From the NCBI GenBank assembly GCA_025558095.1, contig JAIVFI010000012.1, positions 1 to 64,000 of the forward strand: 64,000 bases of DNA, in the 5' to 3' direction. Under the pieces are notes generated by a model. That model did no database searches. It saw only the letters and a list, made by a program, of their open reading frames with translations, and was not told the DNA's origin. The position numbers and the translations under genes are program-made. Below are positions 30,643-63,982 of the stretch, piece by piece. Each line of letters begins with the position of its first letter. The first letter of the stretch is position 1. This DNA is from Hyaloraphidium curvatum SAG 235-1. Taxonomy: Eukaryota > Fungi > Monoblepharomycota.

Positions 30643-32154
30643 CTACTCTTCCACGACCTCGTTCTCCCACCACTTCATCGCGACCATCTCGACGATCTCC
30701 GCAGGCAACCCCGCCCTGCGCTCCCCGTCCTCCCCCGCCCGGGCACCCCAGCACCCCCTTTCGGCCCACCTCCCCGCATAGATCACCGCCTTCACGTCCT
30801 CGACCGCCCACGGGTAGACGCCGGGGGACAGCACCCGCACCGCCTTCCTCGCGGGCGGCCCGCCGAGGTGCATTGCCAGCCTGACCAGCCCGCGGAAGCC
30901 GTAGTACGCCCCCCCGATACGGCACGCGAGCTCCGCGGCCGCGGCGACGTCGCGCGCCTTGAGCGGGGTGTCGGAGCGGGCGACGGCGAGGCGCAGGGAG
31001 CGGAAGAGCTCGTGGCGGGTCGATTGGAGGTGGGTGTCGAAGAAGGAGTGGAAGCCGAAGTGGAAGGGGGGCAGGTCGAGGAGGCCCTGGATGGGGGAGA
31101 AGAAACCCTGCGGTGATCGGAGCAGGTCGCGGTCGAGGAGGTAGCGGAGCCAGGTCGGGGACTTGATCCGGTCGAGGTAGTAATCGTGCGAATAAACGAC
31201 GCGCCGCACGGCTTCGCGGCCCTCGCGCGATTCGAGGTCGTCGAGGAAGAACACGAGCAGCTCCGCGCGGTTCGCGTAGATGGGCTCGATCTCGGGGGCG
31301 ACCTGGTCCTGGGTGAGCACCGAGCCGTGGATGACGGCGTGGCGGCACCAGGCGACGGGATCCTGGAGGTGGTCGAAGATGTCCATGTCCGACAGGCCGG
31401 CGAGGAAGCGCAGCCAGAGCCTGCGCGCGGGATCGGCGCCGTGCCGCACGAGGAGGCGGGCGACGTCGGCGTTCTGCGCCCGGAACAGGAGGGGCGGGAA
31501 CCAGGTGTTTTCGTCGTCGAAATCGTACGACGGGATACCGGAGAGGACGGTGGAAAACAGCTTGTCCAGGTTCGATAGGGTTTCGGGGTCGCCCGTGTGC
31601 GTCCGCGCCACGACGTCGTGCGCCGCATTGAAGGCCAACGAGCTCTCCGTGAACTCCTCGACCAGGCTGTTGTCCCGAACAACCATGCCCTCGGGCTGCT
31701 CGTGGTCCACCTTCCAGTCGATGTAGCGGTACGTCCGGCCCCTGGTCTCCAGCAACCAATCGACGACCCTGCCGCTCCCGCCGTAGAAAGCGGAGATCAG
31801 CGCGTCTGTGCAGTCCATGGGCAGCTTCGCGACGTCGCGCCACCATTCTAGCCACTCCAGCGAGCCGTGGAACGCCGCGAGGTTGAACGCGTGGACGATC
31901 GAGTCGTCGCGCTCGCAGTCTGCCTTCCAGCGCTGCTTGATGGCGAGCTCCATGGTCTGCACGGCGTACAGCAGGCGCCCGCGGTCCAAAGCGGCGGCGG
32001 CGGCGGCGTCGTTGTCGACCGCCGAGACGCAGAGCAGCTTCGCGTCGGCCGGCAAGCCGAGCTCGTCGCATCGCCGCAGCACCGTCGCGAGGACGTCCGC
32101 GCGGTCGGCCCGCGCGGCGAGGAACTTGGTCGCCGCGAAGAACAGCTGCGCCAT
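30643..32154 (-). CDS. Hypothetical protein with degenerate ankyrin-like repeats and C-terminal LPxEIV motif
   Basis: 503-aa intronless ORF containing AAFHGSLEWLEWW, SAFYGGSGRVVDWLL and DVARLLVRHGAD, with tail GLPAEIVEMVAMKW. Confidence 0.6.
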   Translation of the reverse strand: MAQLFFAATKFLAARADRADVLATVLRRCDELGLPADAKLLCVSAVDNDAAAAAALDRGRLLYAVQTMELAIKQRWKADCERDDSIVHAFNLAAFHGSLEWLEWWRDVAKLPMDCTDALISAFYGGSGRVVDWLLETRGRTYRYIDWKVDHEQPEGMVVRDNSLVEEFTESSLAFNAAHDVVARTHTGDPETLSNLDKLFSTVLSGIPSYDFDDENTWFPPLLFRAQNADVARLLVRHGADPARRLWLRFLAGLSDMDIFDHLQDPVAWCRHAVIHGSVLTQDQVAPEIEPIYANRAELLVFFLDDLESREGREAVRRVVYSHDYYLDRIKSPTWLRYLLDRDLLRSPQGFFSPIQGLLDLPPFHFGFHSFFDTHLQSTRHELFRSLRLAVARSDTPLKARDVAAAAELACRIGGAYYGFRGLVRLAMHLGGPPARKAVRVLSPGVYPWAVEDVKAVIYAGRWAERGCWGARAGEDGERRAGLPAEIVEMVAMKWWENEVVEE

Positions 32155-32293
32155 CGCCCGCGGCGGCCCTGCAGAGCGAAGGACGGTACCGGGGGCGGAG
32201 CAGGTAACCCAGAAAGAGGCGGAGCGCGGACCAGCAGCAAGGGCTTGCCACCGCGTCCACTCGACTAGTTGAACAATTGCACCTTGCGACTAG

Positions 32294-33893
32294 ATAACCG
32301 ACGGCCGGCGTTTCAAGTGGACGTTCTCGTACACCTTCGACAACGGGCGGATCGTGAAGTGGGACCTCATCCCCGCCAAGGAGATGGACATCGAGCCGCG
32401 GGTGCACAACAACAAGTTCTACACCCGCCAGTACAAGTACCCGTCGGCCAAGGACCCCGCAGAGGCTAAGCGGAAGCAGCAGTCGCTTTCGTCGATCGAG
32501 TCCATCCGGGGCAACCTGTCGCCGGACAAGCAGCGGCAGCGACGGCGCCGCCTGGATCCCGGCGAGGTGCTCCCCTGCGACCTCACCGACCACCAGTGCG
32601 AGGAGCTGCTCGAGCAGCGCCGCGCCAAGTTCATCAGGGTCGCCGACAAGACCCAGGAGGAGGCCGACGAGATCTGGAGGAAGCTTGGAATGCTACCGGG
32701 CACGGCGCGCTACGAGCTGGAAAGGATGTGTCCGAGCGACTATGTGAGGCGTTCGAAAGGCATCCCGCGGAACAACAAGCGCCGCGAGGGGTGGCGGAAG
32801 GAGGCTGGGGTCCTGAAGGCGAGCACCATTTCGCGGAACGTGGCCTGAATCGATCTCTGAACTTCCCGTGTCGTGACAGGAGGCCTGCTTTTGGGATCCG
32901 GAGAAGAAGGACTATGTCACGCGCTCTTGTTCCGTCGAGGAGTGGTCGTCGAAGCTGCCGACGCCCCGGACCGCGGACCCCGAGGAGTTCGAGAGGCACG
33001 CAGTCTGCATGCTGCGCACGCTCCCCGGGCTTATCGGTGGGTCGAGCGAATCCTCTTCGTTGCAAATCGACAACGTTCTGACGACATTCTATTGATGCAT
33101 AGGTCACTACGGACGCTACCGTGAACGGTGAGCTTGTGACAACTGCCGTCCAATGCCGTGACTAAACCAGGGGATCCAACAGGCAGCTGCGCATGACAAG
33201 CAAGCGCCGTGGGGACCACACGATGGCCAAGATCGCTCAGGTCTACTTTGCGCCCAACGTGCTGGTCGAGCCGTATGATCCTGGAGGCAGCAAGCAAGTG
33301 GGCGCGCCGGGCGTGATCAGCATTATCCGTGGCGAGGACGGCAAGGAGTGGATCTCTTTTCAGAGCAATGTTGGGACCGTACTTCCATACGGCGACGCGA
33401 ATTTTTCGACCAGCATCCGGGGAAGGGCTCCCACTCCGAACCGTCAGGTGCTGTGGGAACGGGAAGCCTTCATTGGGATCACTGACGATCGATTCTTGCG
33501 CAGCTCGTCAAATCTCTTCGGCGCCTCGAGGAGGAAGGCAAAGACCCGCACAAGAACCAGCACCTGCCGGCTTGGCGCAAGGATCTGTGCCTCTCGTTCG
33601 TCCGCGAGTTTCGAACCTCGCGGATGTGCAGGGAGTGCCACATCACCGTGCTCAAGCAGGCGAAGGGCAGGGAGTGCGTGTTGCTGCAGAACAACAAGAC
33701 GATCTGGGGTGTTAAATGTGAGTTCGTCCGCCGCGGGAAACAGGGGATGAGCTGAGCGATCCTTGTAGACTGCGAGCTCTGCAACGTGATGTGGAGCAGG
33801 GACATCAGCGCGGCGTTCAACATCCTCTGGATCTTCTTGTTTACCATCCTCAACAACGGTGACAGGCCCGAGGGGTTTTTCGTTGAGGTTTGA
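32294..33893 (+). mobile_element. Fanzor (Fanzor1-like, eukaryotic TnpB/IS200-IS605 family RNA-guided endonuclease) gene, six exons, apparently 5'-truncated
   Basis: Exons 32294-32818, 32880-33036, 33103-33127, 33171-33447, 33504-33717 and 33769-33893 splice to about 440 aa without stops: ITDG, LDPG (D 32555-57), LPTPRT...HYG...LRM, YGDANFSTSIRGRAPTP, VREFRTSRMCREC (E 33606-08), CELC, WSRDISAAFNI (D 33801-03), RPEGF. Confidence 0.85.
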
Positions 33894-34050
33894 GAGTGTG
33901 GGTCTAGTGAGAGTGGCTGTATGCCTTGCGACGTTAGTCGCATTTTTGAGTAGTAGTAGAAACCCAACAGCGCTTTCGCCTTCCTTGGCCCTCTGTGCCT
34001 CAATCGGTGCGCGTCTATCCGTGCAACCGGCTCTAGGTGCCAGCCTGACC
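33894..34050 (+). ncRNA. Candidate Fanzor omegaRNA / element right end
   Basis: Immediately 3' of the Fanzor stop codon. Hairpins TGCGAC-GTTA-GTCGCA (33927-33942) and CGGTGCGCG-TCTATC-CGTGCAACCG (about 34005-34029). Support is positional and structural only. Confidence 0.35.
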
Positions 34051-34117: not shown

Positions 34118-35748
34118 ATGGCGAGCATCAAAACCCCGATCACGGACCTCTTCGGCATCAAGCACCCCGTGCTCCTGTCGGTGCAATCGCATCCCCTTCG
34201 TTCCGGGCCCGGTCGGCTGAGTCGCTTCCGTGGACAGGGCCGGGATGGGTGCCGTCGCGGGGCCGGAGCTCGTGGCCGCCGTTTCCAATGCCGGAGGGAT
34301 GGGGGTCCTCGGCGGCGTGTACTTTGCGCCTCCTGCCCGTCGGTATCCCCGCCAACGCGGTCCCTGCACGGCCTGACGGGCGCTCCCCGCAGTGCGCCGC
34401 CAGATCAAGGAGATCAAGGCCGACCTCAAGGATCCCAACCTGCCCTGGGGCATCGACCTCCTCCTCCCCCAGGTCGGACCAACTTCTCTCGGCCCCTTTG
34501 GCCGTGCTGACCGCCGGTCGGACAGGTCGGCGGCAACGCAAGGAAGACCAACTACGACTACACCGGCGGCCACCTGCCGGAGCTGATCGACATCATGATC
34601 GAGGAGAAGTGCAGGCTCTTTGTTTCGGCCGTCGGCGTGCCGCCCAAGTGGGCCGTCGACAAGGTCGGCCGGCGTCCGAAACCGCCGCGCGATCGTCGCT
34701 CACTTGCGTTGCGGTTCCGCAGCTCCACTCGGCCGGCATCCCCGTCATGAACATGATTGGGTGAGCATGTCCCTGTCCTGTCGCTCGTCCGGGTCACCGA
34801 TTGCTCCGCAGGGCGGCCAAGCATGTCGCCAAGGCCCTTGAGGTCGGCGTGGACATCATTTGCGTGAGTTCCCGTCCGGCGCCGACCTTTCCTTTCTGAC
34901 TCGGGGGCTTGGTCCAGGCCCAGGGCACCGAGGGGGGTGGTCACACCGGTGGGTAACGAAAACCCGCTCCGTTTGACCCATCTCTGATGCGTCCGCGTGC
35001 AGGCGAGGTCGCCACGAGCGGTACGGCACCGCGTTCCCTCCTTCCGCGGGGCCCATCTCACCCGCCCCGCAGTCCTCATCCCCAAGGTCTGCGACCTCGT
35101 CAAGGGCCGCACCTCCCCCCTCAACGGCAAGCCCATCCTCGTCGTCGCCGCCGGCGGCATCGCCGACGGCCGCGGGCTGGCGATGGCGCTCGCGCTGGGG
35201 GCGTCGGGGGTGTGGGTCGGCACGCGGTTCGTGAACAGCAAGGAGGCCGGGGCGAGCCCGAGGCACCAGCAGCACATCATCAAGGCCACGCACCACGACA
35301 CCATCCGCACGCTGATCTACTCGGGGAGGCCGCTGAGGGTGTTCAAGACGCCGTACGTGGCCAACTGGTGCGTCGCTCTCGCCGCCGAGCGTTCCACACG
35401 TCGTCCTCTGACCTTTTCTGGACTCGACAGGGAGGAGAACCGCCAGGAGGAGATCAAGCGCCTCACCTCGGCCGGCGTCCTGCCGCACGAGAACCACGTC
35501 AAGCAGATCGAAGCATCCGGCCGGGAGGTCACGGGCCAGGAGATGGTGGAGCAGAGCGCGATGCTGATGGGCCAGGTGCGTCCGCCTCCGCTGTCCGGCC
35601 GCCTCATTATGCTCATCCGCGAATCTAGGTCGCCGGCAACATAGACGACGTCCTGTCGGCAGAGACCATCATCAACAACATGGTCACGCAGGCACAGGAC
35701 ATCCTCGTCGGGGCGGCGGCGATGGTCAACCCGAAGGCAAAGATGTGA
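34118..35748 (+). CDS. Nitronate monooxygenase / 2-nitropropane dioxygenase family FMN enzyme with PTS1 (-AKM), many short exons
   Basis: ITDLFGIKHPVL, AAVSNAGGMGVLGG, PWGIDLLLPQVG, AQGTEGGGHTG, VAAGGIADGRGLAMALALGASGVWVGTRF, LMGQVAG, ending PKAKM*. Confidence 0.9.
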
Positions 35749-63148: not shown

Positions 63149-63982
63149 ATGCCCTCCGATCCCGCTGCCCCGGACGCCTACTCGGCCCTCTTCTCCCACC
63201 TCTCCTCGCTCGGTGCCACGGGCCTCGACCGCGTGCGCGTGGAGGACCGCGGGCCGCCGCGCGGGCGGGGGCTTTTTGCCGCGGCGCCGATACCCGGCGG
63301 GTCGCGCGTGCTGTCGGTGCCATTGCACGCGTGCGTGCGCGTCGAACTGGCGGGCGATGTGCTGGGACAGGACGTCGTTGAGAAATTCGACGCGTTGCGG
63401 GGGCCGGGAGCAACGTCGGGAGCGTTTGCGGGGCTTGGCGAGGCGGACGGCGCGGCGCTGCTCGCGCTGCTCCTCGTCCGGGCGCGCGGCGAACTGCTGG
63501 ACGGCGAGTCGCACCTCGCGGACGACTCCGCGGATGCCGGCGAACAGGATTCCCGATCCCGGGCCCGCGCGCTGCTCCGACACTACCTCCCCACTCTGCC
63601 CCCAGAAGTCCAAGGCGGCTTCCCCACCTCCCCCCCCGCCCGCGCCCTCACCGCCTCCCTCGCCGCGCGCCTCCTCCCCCTGCTTCCCCCCTCCCCCTCG
63701 CACACCCCGGACCGCTTCCTCTGGGCCTACTCGTGCGTGCTTTCCCGCTCAATGACCTTTGCCCTGCCCGACGGGAGCCAGCTCCTGTTGATGGTGCCGG
63801 CGGCGGACATGGCGAACCACCACCCGTCGCCGGCGGACGCGAGGTACCACCTGTATGCGACGGAGGAGAGGGAGGTCAGCTTGTATGCGAGGTGGGAGCT
63901 GGAGCCGGGGGAGGAGGTGACGATCAACTATGGCAGGGGGGTGGGCGAGGGCACGCTGCACTACGGCTTCGTCGTGCGCTAG
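63149..63982 (+). CDS. SET-domain lysine methyltransferase (SETD3/RuBisCO-LSMT-like)
   Basis: GRGLFA...I..G..VLSVP, FLWAYSCVLSRS, VPAADMANH and GEEVTINYG...LHYGFV. Confidence 0.85.
   Translation: MPSDPAAPDAYSALFSHLSSLGATGLDRVRVEDRGPPRGRGLFAAAPIPGGSRVLSVPLHACVRVELAGDVLGQDVVEKFDALRGPGATSGAFAGLGEADGAALLALLLVRARGELLDGESHLADDSADAGEQDSRSRARALLRHYLPTLPPEVQGGFPTSPPARALTASLAARLLPLLPPSPSHTPDRFLWAYSCVLSRSMTFALPDGSQLLLMVPAADMANHHPSPADARYHLYATEEREVSLYARWELEPGEEVTINYGRGVGEGTLHYGFVVR

Follow-up and report, generated by a model that had tools for sequence, protein, structure and literature searches.

A Fanzor1-derived gene piece in a probable deletion derivative of an IS630/Tc1-mariner-type transposon of Hyaloraphidium curvatum

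Introns in Fanzors and the association of Fanzors with Mariner elements are already known (PMC10530073, PMC3627910), and the published Fanzor1 pattern places 120 to 280 amino acids (aa) between the RuvC-I aspartate and the RuvC-II glutamate (bioRxiv 2023.08.09.552727). The Fanzor1 proteins SpuFz1 (Spizellomyces punctatus), GtFz1, and PpFz1 (PMC10432273, PMC11423790) have a DPG motif at RuvC-I, as do two longer paralogues of the gene described here, C23 and C15, but not that gene itself. The family to which it belongs resembles these three proteins in having the glutamate six residues ahead of a C4 finger and an RD motif at RuvC-III, and also in the short conserved right end past the stop codon, with partial copies as well as solo right ends in one genome. 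PpFz1 likewise has a RuvC insertion.

The locus (32266-33961; 1,696 bp), hereafter the window copy, lies in the window, the 64,000-nucleotide (nt) stretch of the genome of the monoblepharid chytrid Hyaloraphidium curvatum that was analyzed. Its longer relatives in the same genome share 94% (C23) and 75% (C15) DNA identity with it. The window copy is non-autonomous and very probably derives by deletion from an IS630/Tc1-mariner-type transposon with a Fanzor1 gene at the right end.

Exon structure and transcripts of the window copy

The preliminary description of this DNA joined six exons across five introns into one stop-free frame running from 32294 to a stop codon at 33891-33893 (440 aa), and this frame is confirmed when the phase is carried from exon to exon; database searches took each exon of the model separately. 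The gene is not hidden, as had been thought, since GenBank already has a model for it, KAI9024522.1, a "hypothetical protein" of 413 aa. The first in-frame ATG is at 32384.

Splice junctions were compared with assembled contigs of run X1, the sole RNA-like public run found, whose RNA nature is presumed. Contigs from this run are 100% identical to the window over a neighboring gene, indicating that they come from the same strain or a very close one. The contigs contain joints at introns 1 and 2 and a joint of 33126-33182 at intron 3, and at introns 4 and 5 they have loose ends equal to the next exon, such that all five introns receive support. The ends originally given for introns 1, 2, 4, and 5 stand, but the acceptor of intron 3 is at 33182, where KAI9024522.1 also has it, and not at 33170; the corrected intron (33128-33182, 55 nt) leaves the frame unchanged and makes the product four residues shorter. 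The donor of intron 1 is GC in the window copy and GT in the expressed paralogue C23, so the RNA proves the position of this intron and not the GC-AG splicing proposed for the window copy; GenBank uses as its donor a GT 21 nt downstream. The 25-nt microexon of the original model is also supported by the contigs. The gene and its neighbors have the following features.

30643-32154, minus strand: host neighbor gene, intronless, weak ankyrin match, transcribed (RNA contigs); gene start 110 bp from the insertion
32298-32818, plus strand: 3' remnant of the RuvC-I exon, covering the RuvC insertion and the helix after it, without the catalytic aspartate (homologue alignments)
32819-32879, plus strand: intron 1, GC-AG here and GT-AG in C23 (RNA contigs for position)
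32880-33036, plus strand: exon 2 (frame and RNA contigs)
33037-33102, plus strand: intron 2 (frame and RNA contigs)
33103-33127, plus strand: microexon, 25 nt, protein identical in C23 and C15 (RNA contigs and paralogues)
33128-33182, plus strand: intron 3, acceptor corrected (RNA contigs and GenBank model)
33183-33447, plus strand: exon 4, with YGDANF motif (RNA contigs and homologues)
33448-33503, plus strand: intron 4 (frame and RNA contigs)
33504-33717, plus strand: exon 5, RuvC-II glutamate six residues ahead of the first zinc-finger CxxC (homologue alignment)
33718-33768, plus strand: intron 5 (frame and RNA contigs)
33769-33893, plus strand: exon 6, second CxxC, RuvC-III aspartate (SRD), and stop (homologue alignment)
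34118-35644, plus strand: host neighbor gene (part), nitronate-monooxygenase-like, spliced, transcribed (RNA contigs)

The element sits between two divergent, transcribed host genes. Elsewhere in the window, a 28-bp segment (63449-63476) matches C23 Fanzor DNA at 93%, probably by chance.

Among the exonic variants listed, 28 of 28 carry the C23 allele in the RNA, and the main RNA contig extends upstream into C23 sequence, indicating that the window copy is not seen expressed; because contigs from a single run drop rare variants and 35 further variant rows fall outside the listing, its silence is unprovable from them. The exons of the window copy and C23 differ by 22 synonymous and 14 nonsynonymous codons among 431, and their introns are 75 to 91% identical. 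As far as these codon counts go, the synonymous excess reflects selection on the lineage and says nothing of selection on the deleted window copy, and the open frame across five introns reflects that the copy descended recently from a full-length gene under selection. The earlier reading of the conserved frame as recent activity or selection therefore holds for selection on the parent lineage and fails for activity of the window copy.

These data also bear on co-option, under which a dead Fanzor fragment of 406 to 413 aa, or a guide RNA, would be expressed from the adjoining divergent promoter and have acquired a role. Such a role is very improbable: the window allele occurs at no listed exonic site in the RNA, introns 1 and 4 have weaker donors than their C23 counterparts, and the synonymous excess, which might be counted in its favor together with the lack of stops and frameshifts, the in-frame ATG, and the insertion between two transcribed genes, is accounted for by the history of the parent.

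Catalytic residues and Fanzor1 membership

The window copy had been credited with an intact D-E-D triad, its first aspartate being that of an LDPG motif. In C23 and C15, the same exon continues upstream into a RuvC-I motif, F-I-x-A-T-D-P-G-N-K-A-I-T-T-S-V, whose ATDPG precedes the first homologous residue of the window copy by about 55 residues and is absent from that copy; the rest of the window holds no RuvC-I remnant. This aspartate is kept, after a hydrophobic strand, in six of six full homologues (ATDPG in two, GVDPG in two, GSDPG, and GTDIG), namely both paralogues and the four outside loci extending as far as RuvC-I; a profile of the RuvC-I exon gave five outside proteins. Homologous exons with identical exon breaks are present on the outside contigs L060 to L063, the last of which has DIG for DPG. 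The LDPG segment aligns to RRRA--PG in C15, which lacks the aspartate, and in the alignment none of the outside homologues has an aspartate at that position. The isoleucine and threonine of a further motif of the original model, ITDG, are encoded by transposon left-end DNA. The triad is thus not intact, and the two caveats with which it had been proposed, the odd RQRRRRL before DPG and the missing N-terminal region, pointed to a real loss of RuvC-I and the N-terminal part.

The RuvC-II glutamate (VREFRTS), the four-cysteine finger, and the RuvC-III aspartate (SRD) are present and conserved, giving the window copy two of the three catalytic residues, as opposed to all three in C23 and C15. The RuvC-II motif in exon 5 (E-x-x-T/S-S-x-x-C) is invariant across the homologues and a sister family, which upholds the assignment to a spliced Fanzor1-type gene with its RuvC-II glutamate shifted to the zinc finger. 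Profile evidence is weaker: the two halves of PF07282 match exons 5 and 6 with E values of 0.098 and 0.22, although the C15 GenBank protein carries a precomputed PF07282 label, and the Atlas matches the C-terminal part of a paralogue's GenBank protein to TNB-domain clusters with a score of 0.95. These last two results come from multi-exon GenBank records of the paralogues, one of which closely overlaps the product of the window copy; the assignment itself is based on the exon-wise searches.

An AlphaFold2 model of the RuvC-I exon, built on the exon alignment, has a pLDDT of 60, with values below 50 in the first 34 residues. In this model, a predicted strand terminates at ATD, after which come a turn and another strand. 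Searches with the exon model by Foldseek, VIA-align, and Atlas gave no match, nor did PDB sequence searches, and solved Fanzors were matched neither in sequence nor in fold; Atlas with the first 100 aa of the exon gave no usable match. A single-sequence AlphaFold2 model (pLDDT 38) was unusable, and no model was good enough to position the three acidic residues. Of the HMM and structure searches suggested at the outset, those with PF07282 gave weak matches and those with Foldseek and in PDB found nothing.

An intact, compact Fanzor whose RuvC-I aspartate is that of LDPG would have an open frame and a spacing of 271 to 278 aa to the glutamate, inside the published range, whereas the 410 aa of C23 is outside it. 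Even so, this reading can be virtually discounted: the LDPG aspartate is missing from C15 and from all outside homologues, follows RRRRL, and falls in a low-confidence, unresolved loop of the model in which ATD ends a strand, and the recognition lobe is absent and the deletion junction visible. The 410-aa spacing in C23 and C15 results from an insertion inside RuvC-I. On sequence grounds, the window locus is a genuine piece of a spliced Fanzor1-derived gene and a dead copy; having neither the first catalytic aspartate nor a recognition lobe, its product would be incapable of cutting DNA. The locus cautions that a DPG may resemble RuvC-I by chance.

Element ends, longer relatives, and the candidate guide RNA

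The boundaries of the window copy and its internal junction are marked by the following features.

32264-32265, no strand: 5' copy of the target-site duplication, AC, 2 bp (compared with C15, GC/GC, and six of six sister pairs)
32266-32300, plus strand: transposon left end, 35 bp, common to the C15 element and a C21 fragment (sequence match)
32298-32300, plus strand: CCG microhomology at which the internal deletion is joined, about 18 kb of the C15 element being absent here (sequence comparison)
33894-33961, plus strand: right end conserved among the copies, a candidate omega-RNA scaffold that includes an invariant 5-bp hairpin (copies compared)
33962-33963, no strand: 3' copy of the target-site duplication, AC; by analogy with known Fanzors, the flank that follows would be the guide (sequence)

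The 35-bp left end is fused at CCG, in the middle of a Fanzor exon, to the last 1.66 kb of an approximately 19.8-kb IS630/Tc1-mariner element. Both element ends, the 2-bp duplication, and the microhomology junction are observed, as is the loss of the transposase, the N-terminal part, and the RuvC-I aspartate; the five introns occupy positions inherited in common with the paralogues. The left end precedes an IS630/Tc1 transposase in C15 and C21, and its exact 20-mer occurs at only three places in the genome, two of them ahead of a DDE_3 transposase. The C15 transposase is an HTH-DDE protein of the IS630/Tc1/mariner type (PF13358, E = 7e-14); the C21 copy (C21:582045-582606, minus strand) is a 538-bp left-end fragment that includes the transposase start and is 93% identical to C15. 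The right end, to 33961, is common to four loci, beyond which the flanks are unrelated.

The target-site duplication is AC in the window copy, GC in C15, and TG, AC, CC, TG, AT, and CC in six members of the sister family. With a probability of 1 in 16 each, eight matching pairs of eight are not due to chance. The sequence of the duplication varies among the eight pairs and does not follow the TA target-site rule, and neither family has terminal inverted repeats, the left and right ends being non-complementary. Duplications of TA, of CTAG, and of 6 bp were rejected, as none fits both the window copy and C15. It is exceedingly improbable that the locus is a Helitron-like 3' fragment with a terminal hairpin and TAG-rich end, comparable to the Chlamydomonas Fanzor1 elements: 5'-truncated Helitron2 Fanzors are known (PMC3627910) and a hairpin lies near the right end, but the left end belongs to a DDE transposase element and every duplication measures 2 bp.

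The deletion derivative combines a left end of the C15 type with a Fanzor gene of the C23 type, and no direct parent with both is in the assembly, suggesting either a parent that the assembly lacks or a recombinant origin of the window copy. A microhomology-mediated deletion, of the kind seen in aborted gap repair, would have produced the window copy, either ahead of its insertion between the host genes or afterwards.

Searching the genome for full-length copies and an associated transposase, as had been recommended, recovered two longer elements that carry a transposase and a Fanzor gene.

C23:297187-~315270, minus strand: probable full-length element; transposase with one stop; Fanzor triad-complete and expressed
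C15:359057-378820, plus strand: element of 19,764 bp with GC duplication; transposase without its last helix

GenBank covers only the last 593 aa of the C23 Fanzor, and its C15 record (456 aa) begins after RuvC-I. A spliced C23 RNA contig of 7,725 nt extends about 6.7 kb upstream of the point at which the window copy starts. A simple splice-site model threads about 2,815 aa through 31 exons of C23 without a stop, and as many as 3,300 aa through C15. All C23 exons above 5 aa in length are matched collinearly in C15, 12 of C23 exons 11 to 31 are collinear over 6 kb of one outside contig, and strong canonical introns number five on the sense strand versus none on the other. One giant spliced Fanzor open reading frame is, on these models, somewhat favored, with the caveats that GC-rich DNA eases path finding, that the scores of about four introns are weak, and that a single contig may cover two genes. 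The upstream C23 exons, in the region expected for the WED/REC lobe, are conserved in homologues; a Pfam search of ten of them gave nothing significant, and no domain in the extension could be named.

C23 and C15 share a 4.1-kb block at 89% identity, next to the Fanzor region at 73%. The transposase frames of C23 and C5 run about 500 aa beyond the DDE domain and are followed by several kilobases without clear coding signal. A ubiquitin-like stretch ending in HVRIRGRGG, suspected by eye in C23 exons 3 and 4 (L033:4490-4969, minus strand), was rejected for want of exon-wise Pfam support; it coincides with the edge of the 89% block. Tandem repeats lie between transposase and Fanzor in both elements (three 39-nt units at L034:1622-1738 in C23 and GC-rich 20-nt units at L036:8658-8947 in C15).

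The sister family comprises ten near-identical 8-kb IS630-Fanzor elements (on C3, C5, C6, C7, C11, C15, C28, and C35) with a transposase frame open for 784 aa. Further PF07282 matches occur at C2:397554, C2:426655, C5:336026, and C14:724943, three of the four above the cutoff and those on C2 about 8 kb from transposase fragments; another transposase family has five more copies, on C4, C5, C16, C25, and C36.

The conserved right end (62 to 68 nt) folds no better than shuffled sequences (z = -0.4 to -1.0), its hairpin shows no covariation, and Rfam gave no match. Its 62 nt at 33900-33961 are 100% identical to a solo copy (C29:418170-418231), a possible ghost guide locus. The six sister-family left flanks share no motif, such that a TAM is not evident, and all nine complete right ends of that family have a pyrimidine at the fifth position of the right flank. 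By known Fanzor biology (PMC10432273, PMC13565253), the full-length protein would use the right-end RNA, whose 3' part would be the flank; by analogy with other Fanzors, the C23 protein would cut emptied donor sites and thereby restore the element. The window copy, unable to cut, would retain ends and a candidate scaffold in the manner of a ghost locus, and its only likely remaining activities would be mobilization in trans and provision of a right-end guide RNA to a full-length protein.

Comparison with described Fanzor systems

The interest lies in the C23 paralogue and the element ends rather than in the window locus, itself ordinary transposon debris. C23 carries an expressed, triad-complete Fanzor1 that annotation had split and profile searches nearly missed. 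Fanzors have about 600 aa (PMC10530073), as opposed to about 2,800 aa in the modeled full-length protein, with its 410 aa from aspartate to glutamate, making it apparently four to five times the usual size. It is conceivable, though rather unlikely, that these genes represent an undescribed lineage of giant (2,800 to 3,300 aa, about 30 introns), catalytically complete Fanzor1s in IS630-type elements without inverted repeats or TA specificity, in which the nuclease needs little or no TAM or the N-terminal part ties guide recognition to transposition. A slight or absent TAM requirement is suggested by the insertion flanks, which share no obvious motif. Within incomplete coverage of the literature, no report was found of these elements, of Fanzors this large, or of variable 2-bp duplications with such a transposase.

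The Mariner-associated Fanzor1 elements PGv-1, PUl-1, and PUl-4 (PMC3627910) also have a Tc1/mariner-type transposase on the left and Fanzor1 on the right, and have non-autonomous and chimeric derivatives. Unlike the 8- to 20-kb elements described here, they have terminal inverted repeats and TA duplications; the present elements have neither, with duplications of AC, GC, TG, CC, or AT. This departure from the described Mariner-Fanzor elements raises the question of how the nuclease distinguishes an emptied from a filled site. Chlamydomonas Fanzor1c (CRe/Helitron2; PMC10530073, PMC3627910) also has spliceosomal introns, and many of its copies keep an intact 3' end in spite of truncation or internal deletion, but it belongs to another transposon class, with duplications of 7 to 19 bp as opposed to 2 bp. 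The ghost Spu-1 loci (PMC10432273), like the window copy, have kept the ends and the guide-RNA region and lost the nuclease; the window copy differs from them in retaining the 3' end of the spliced gene.
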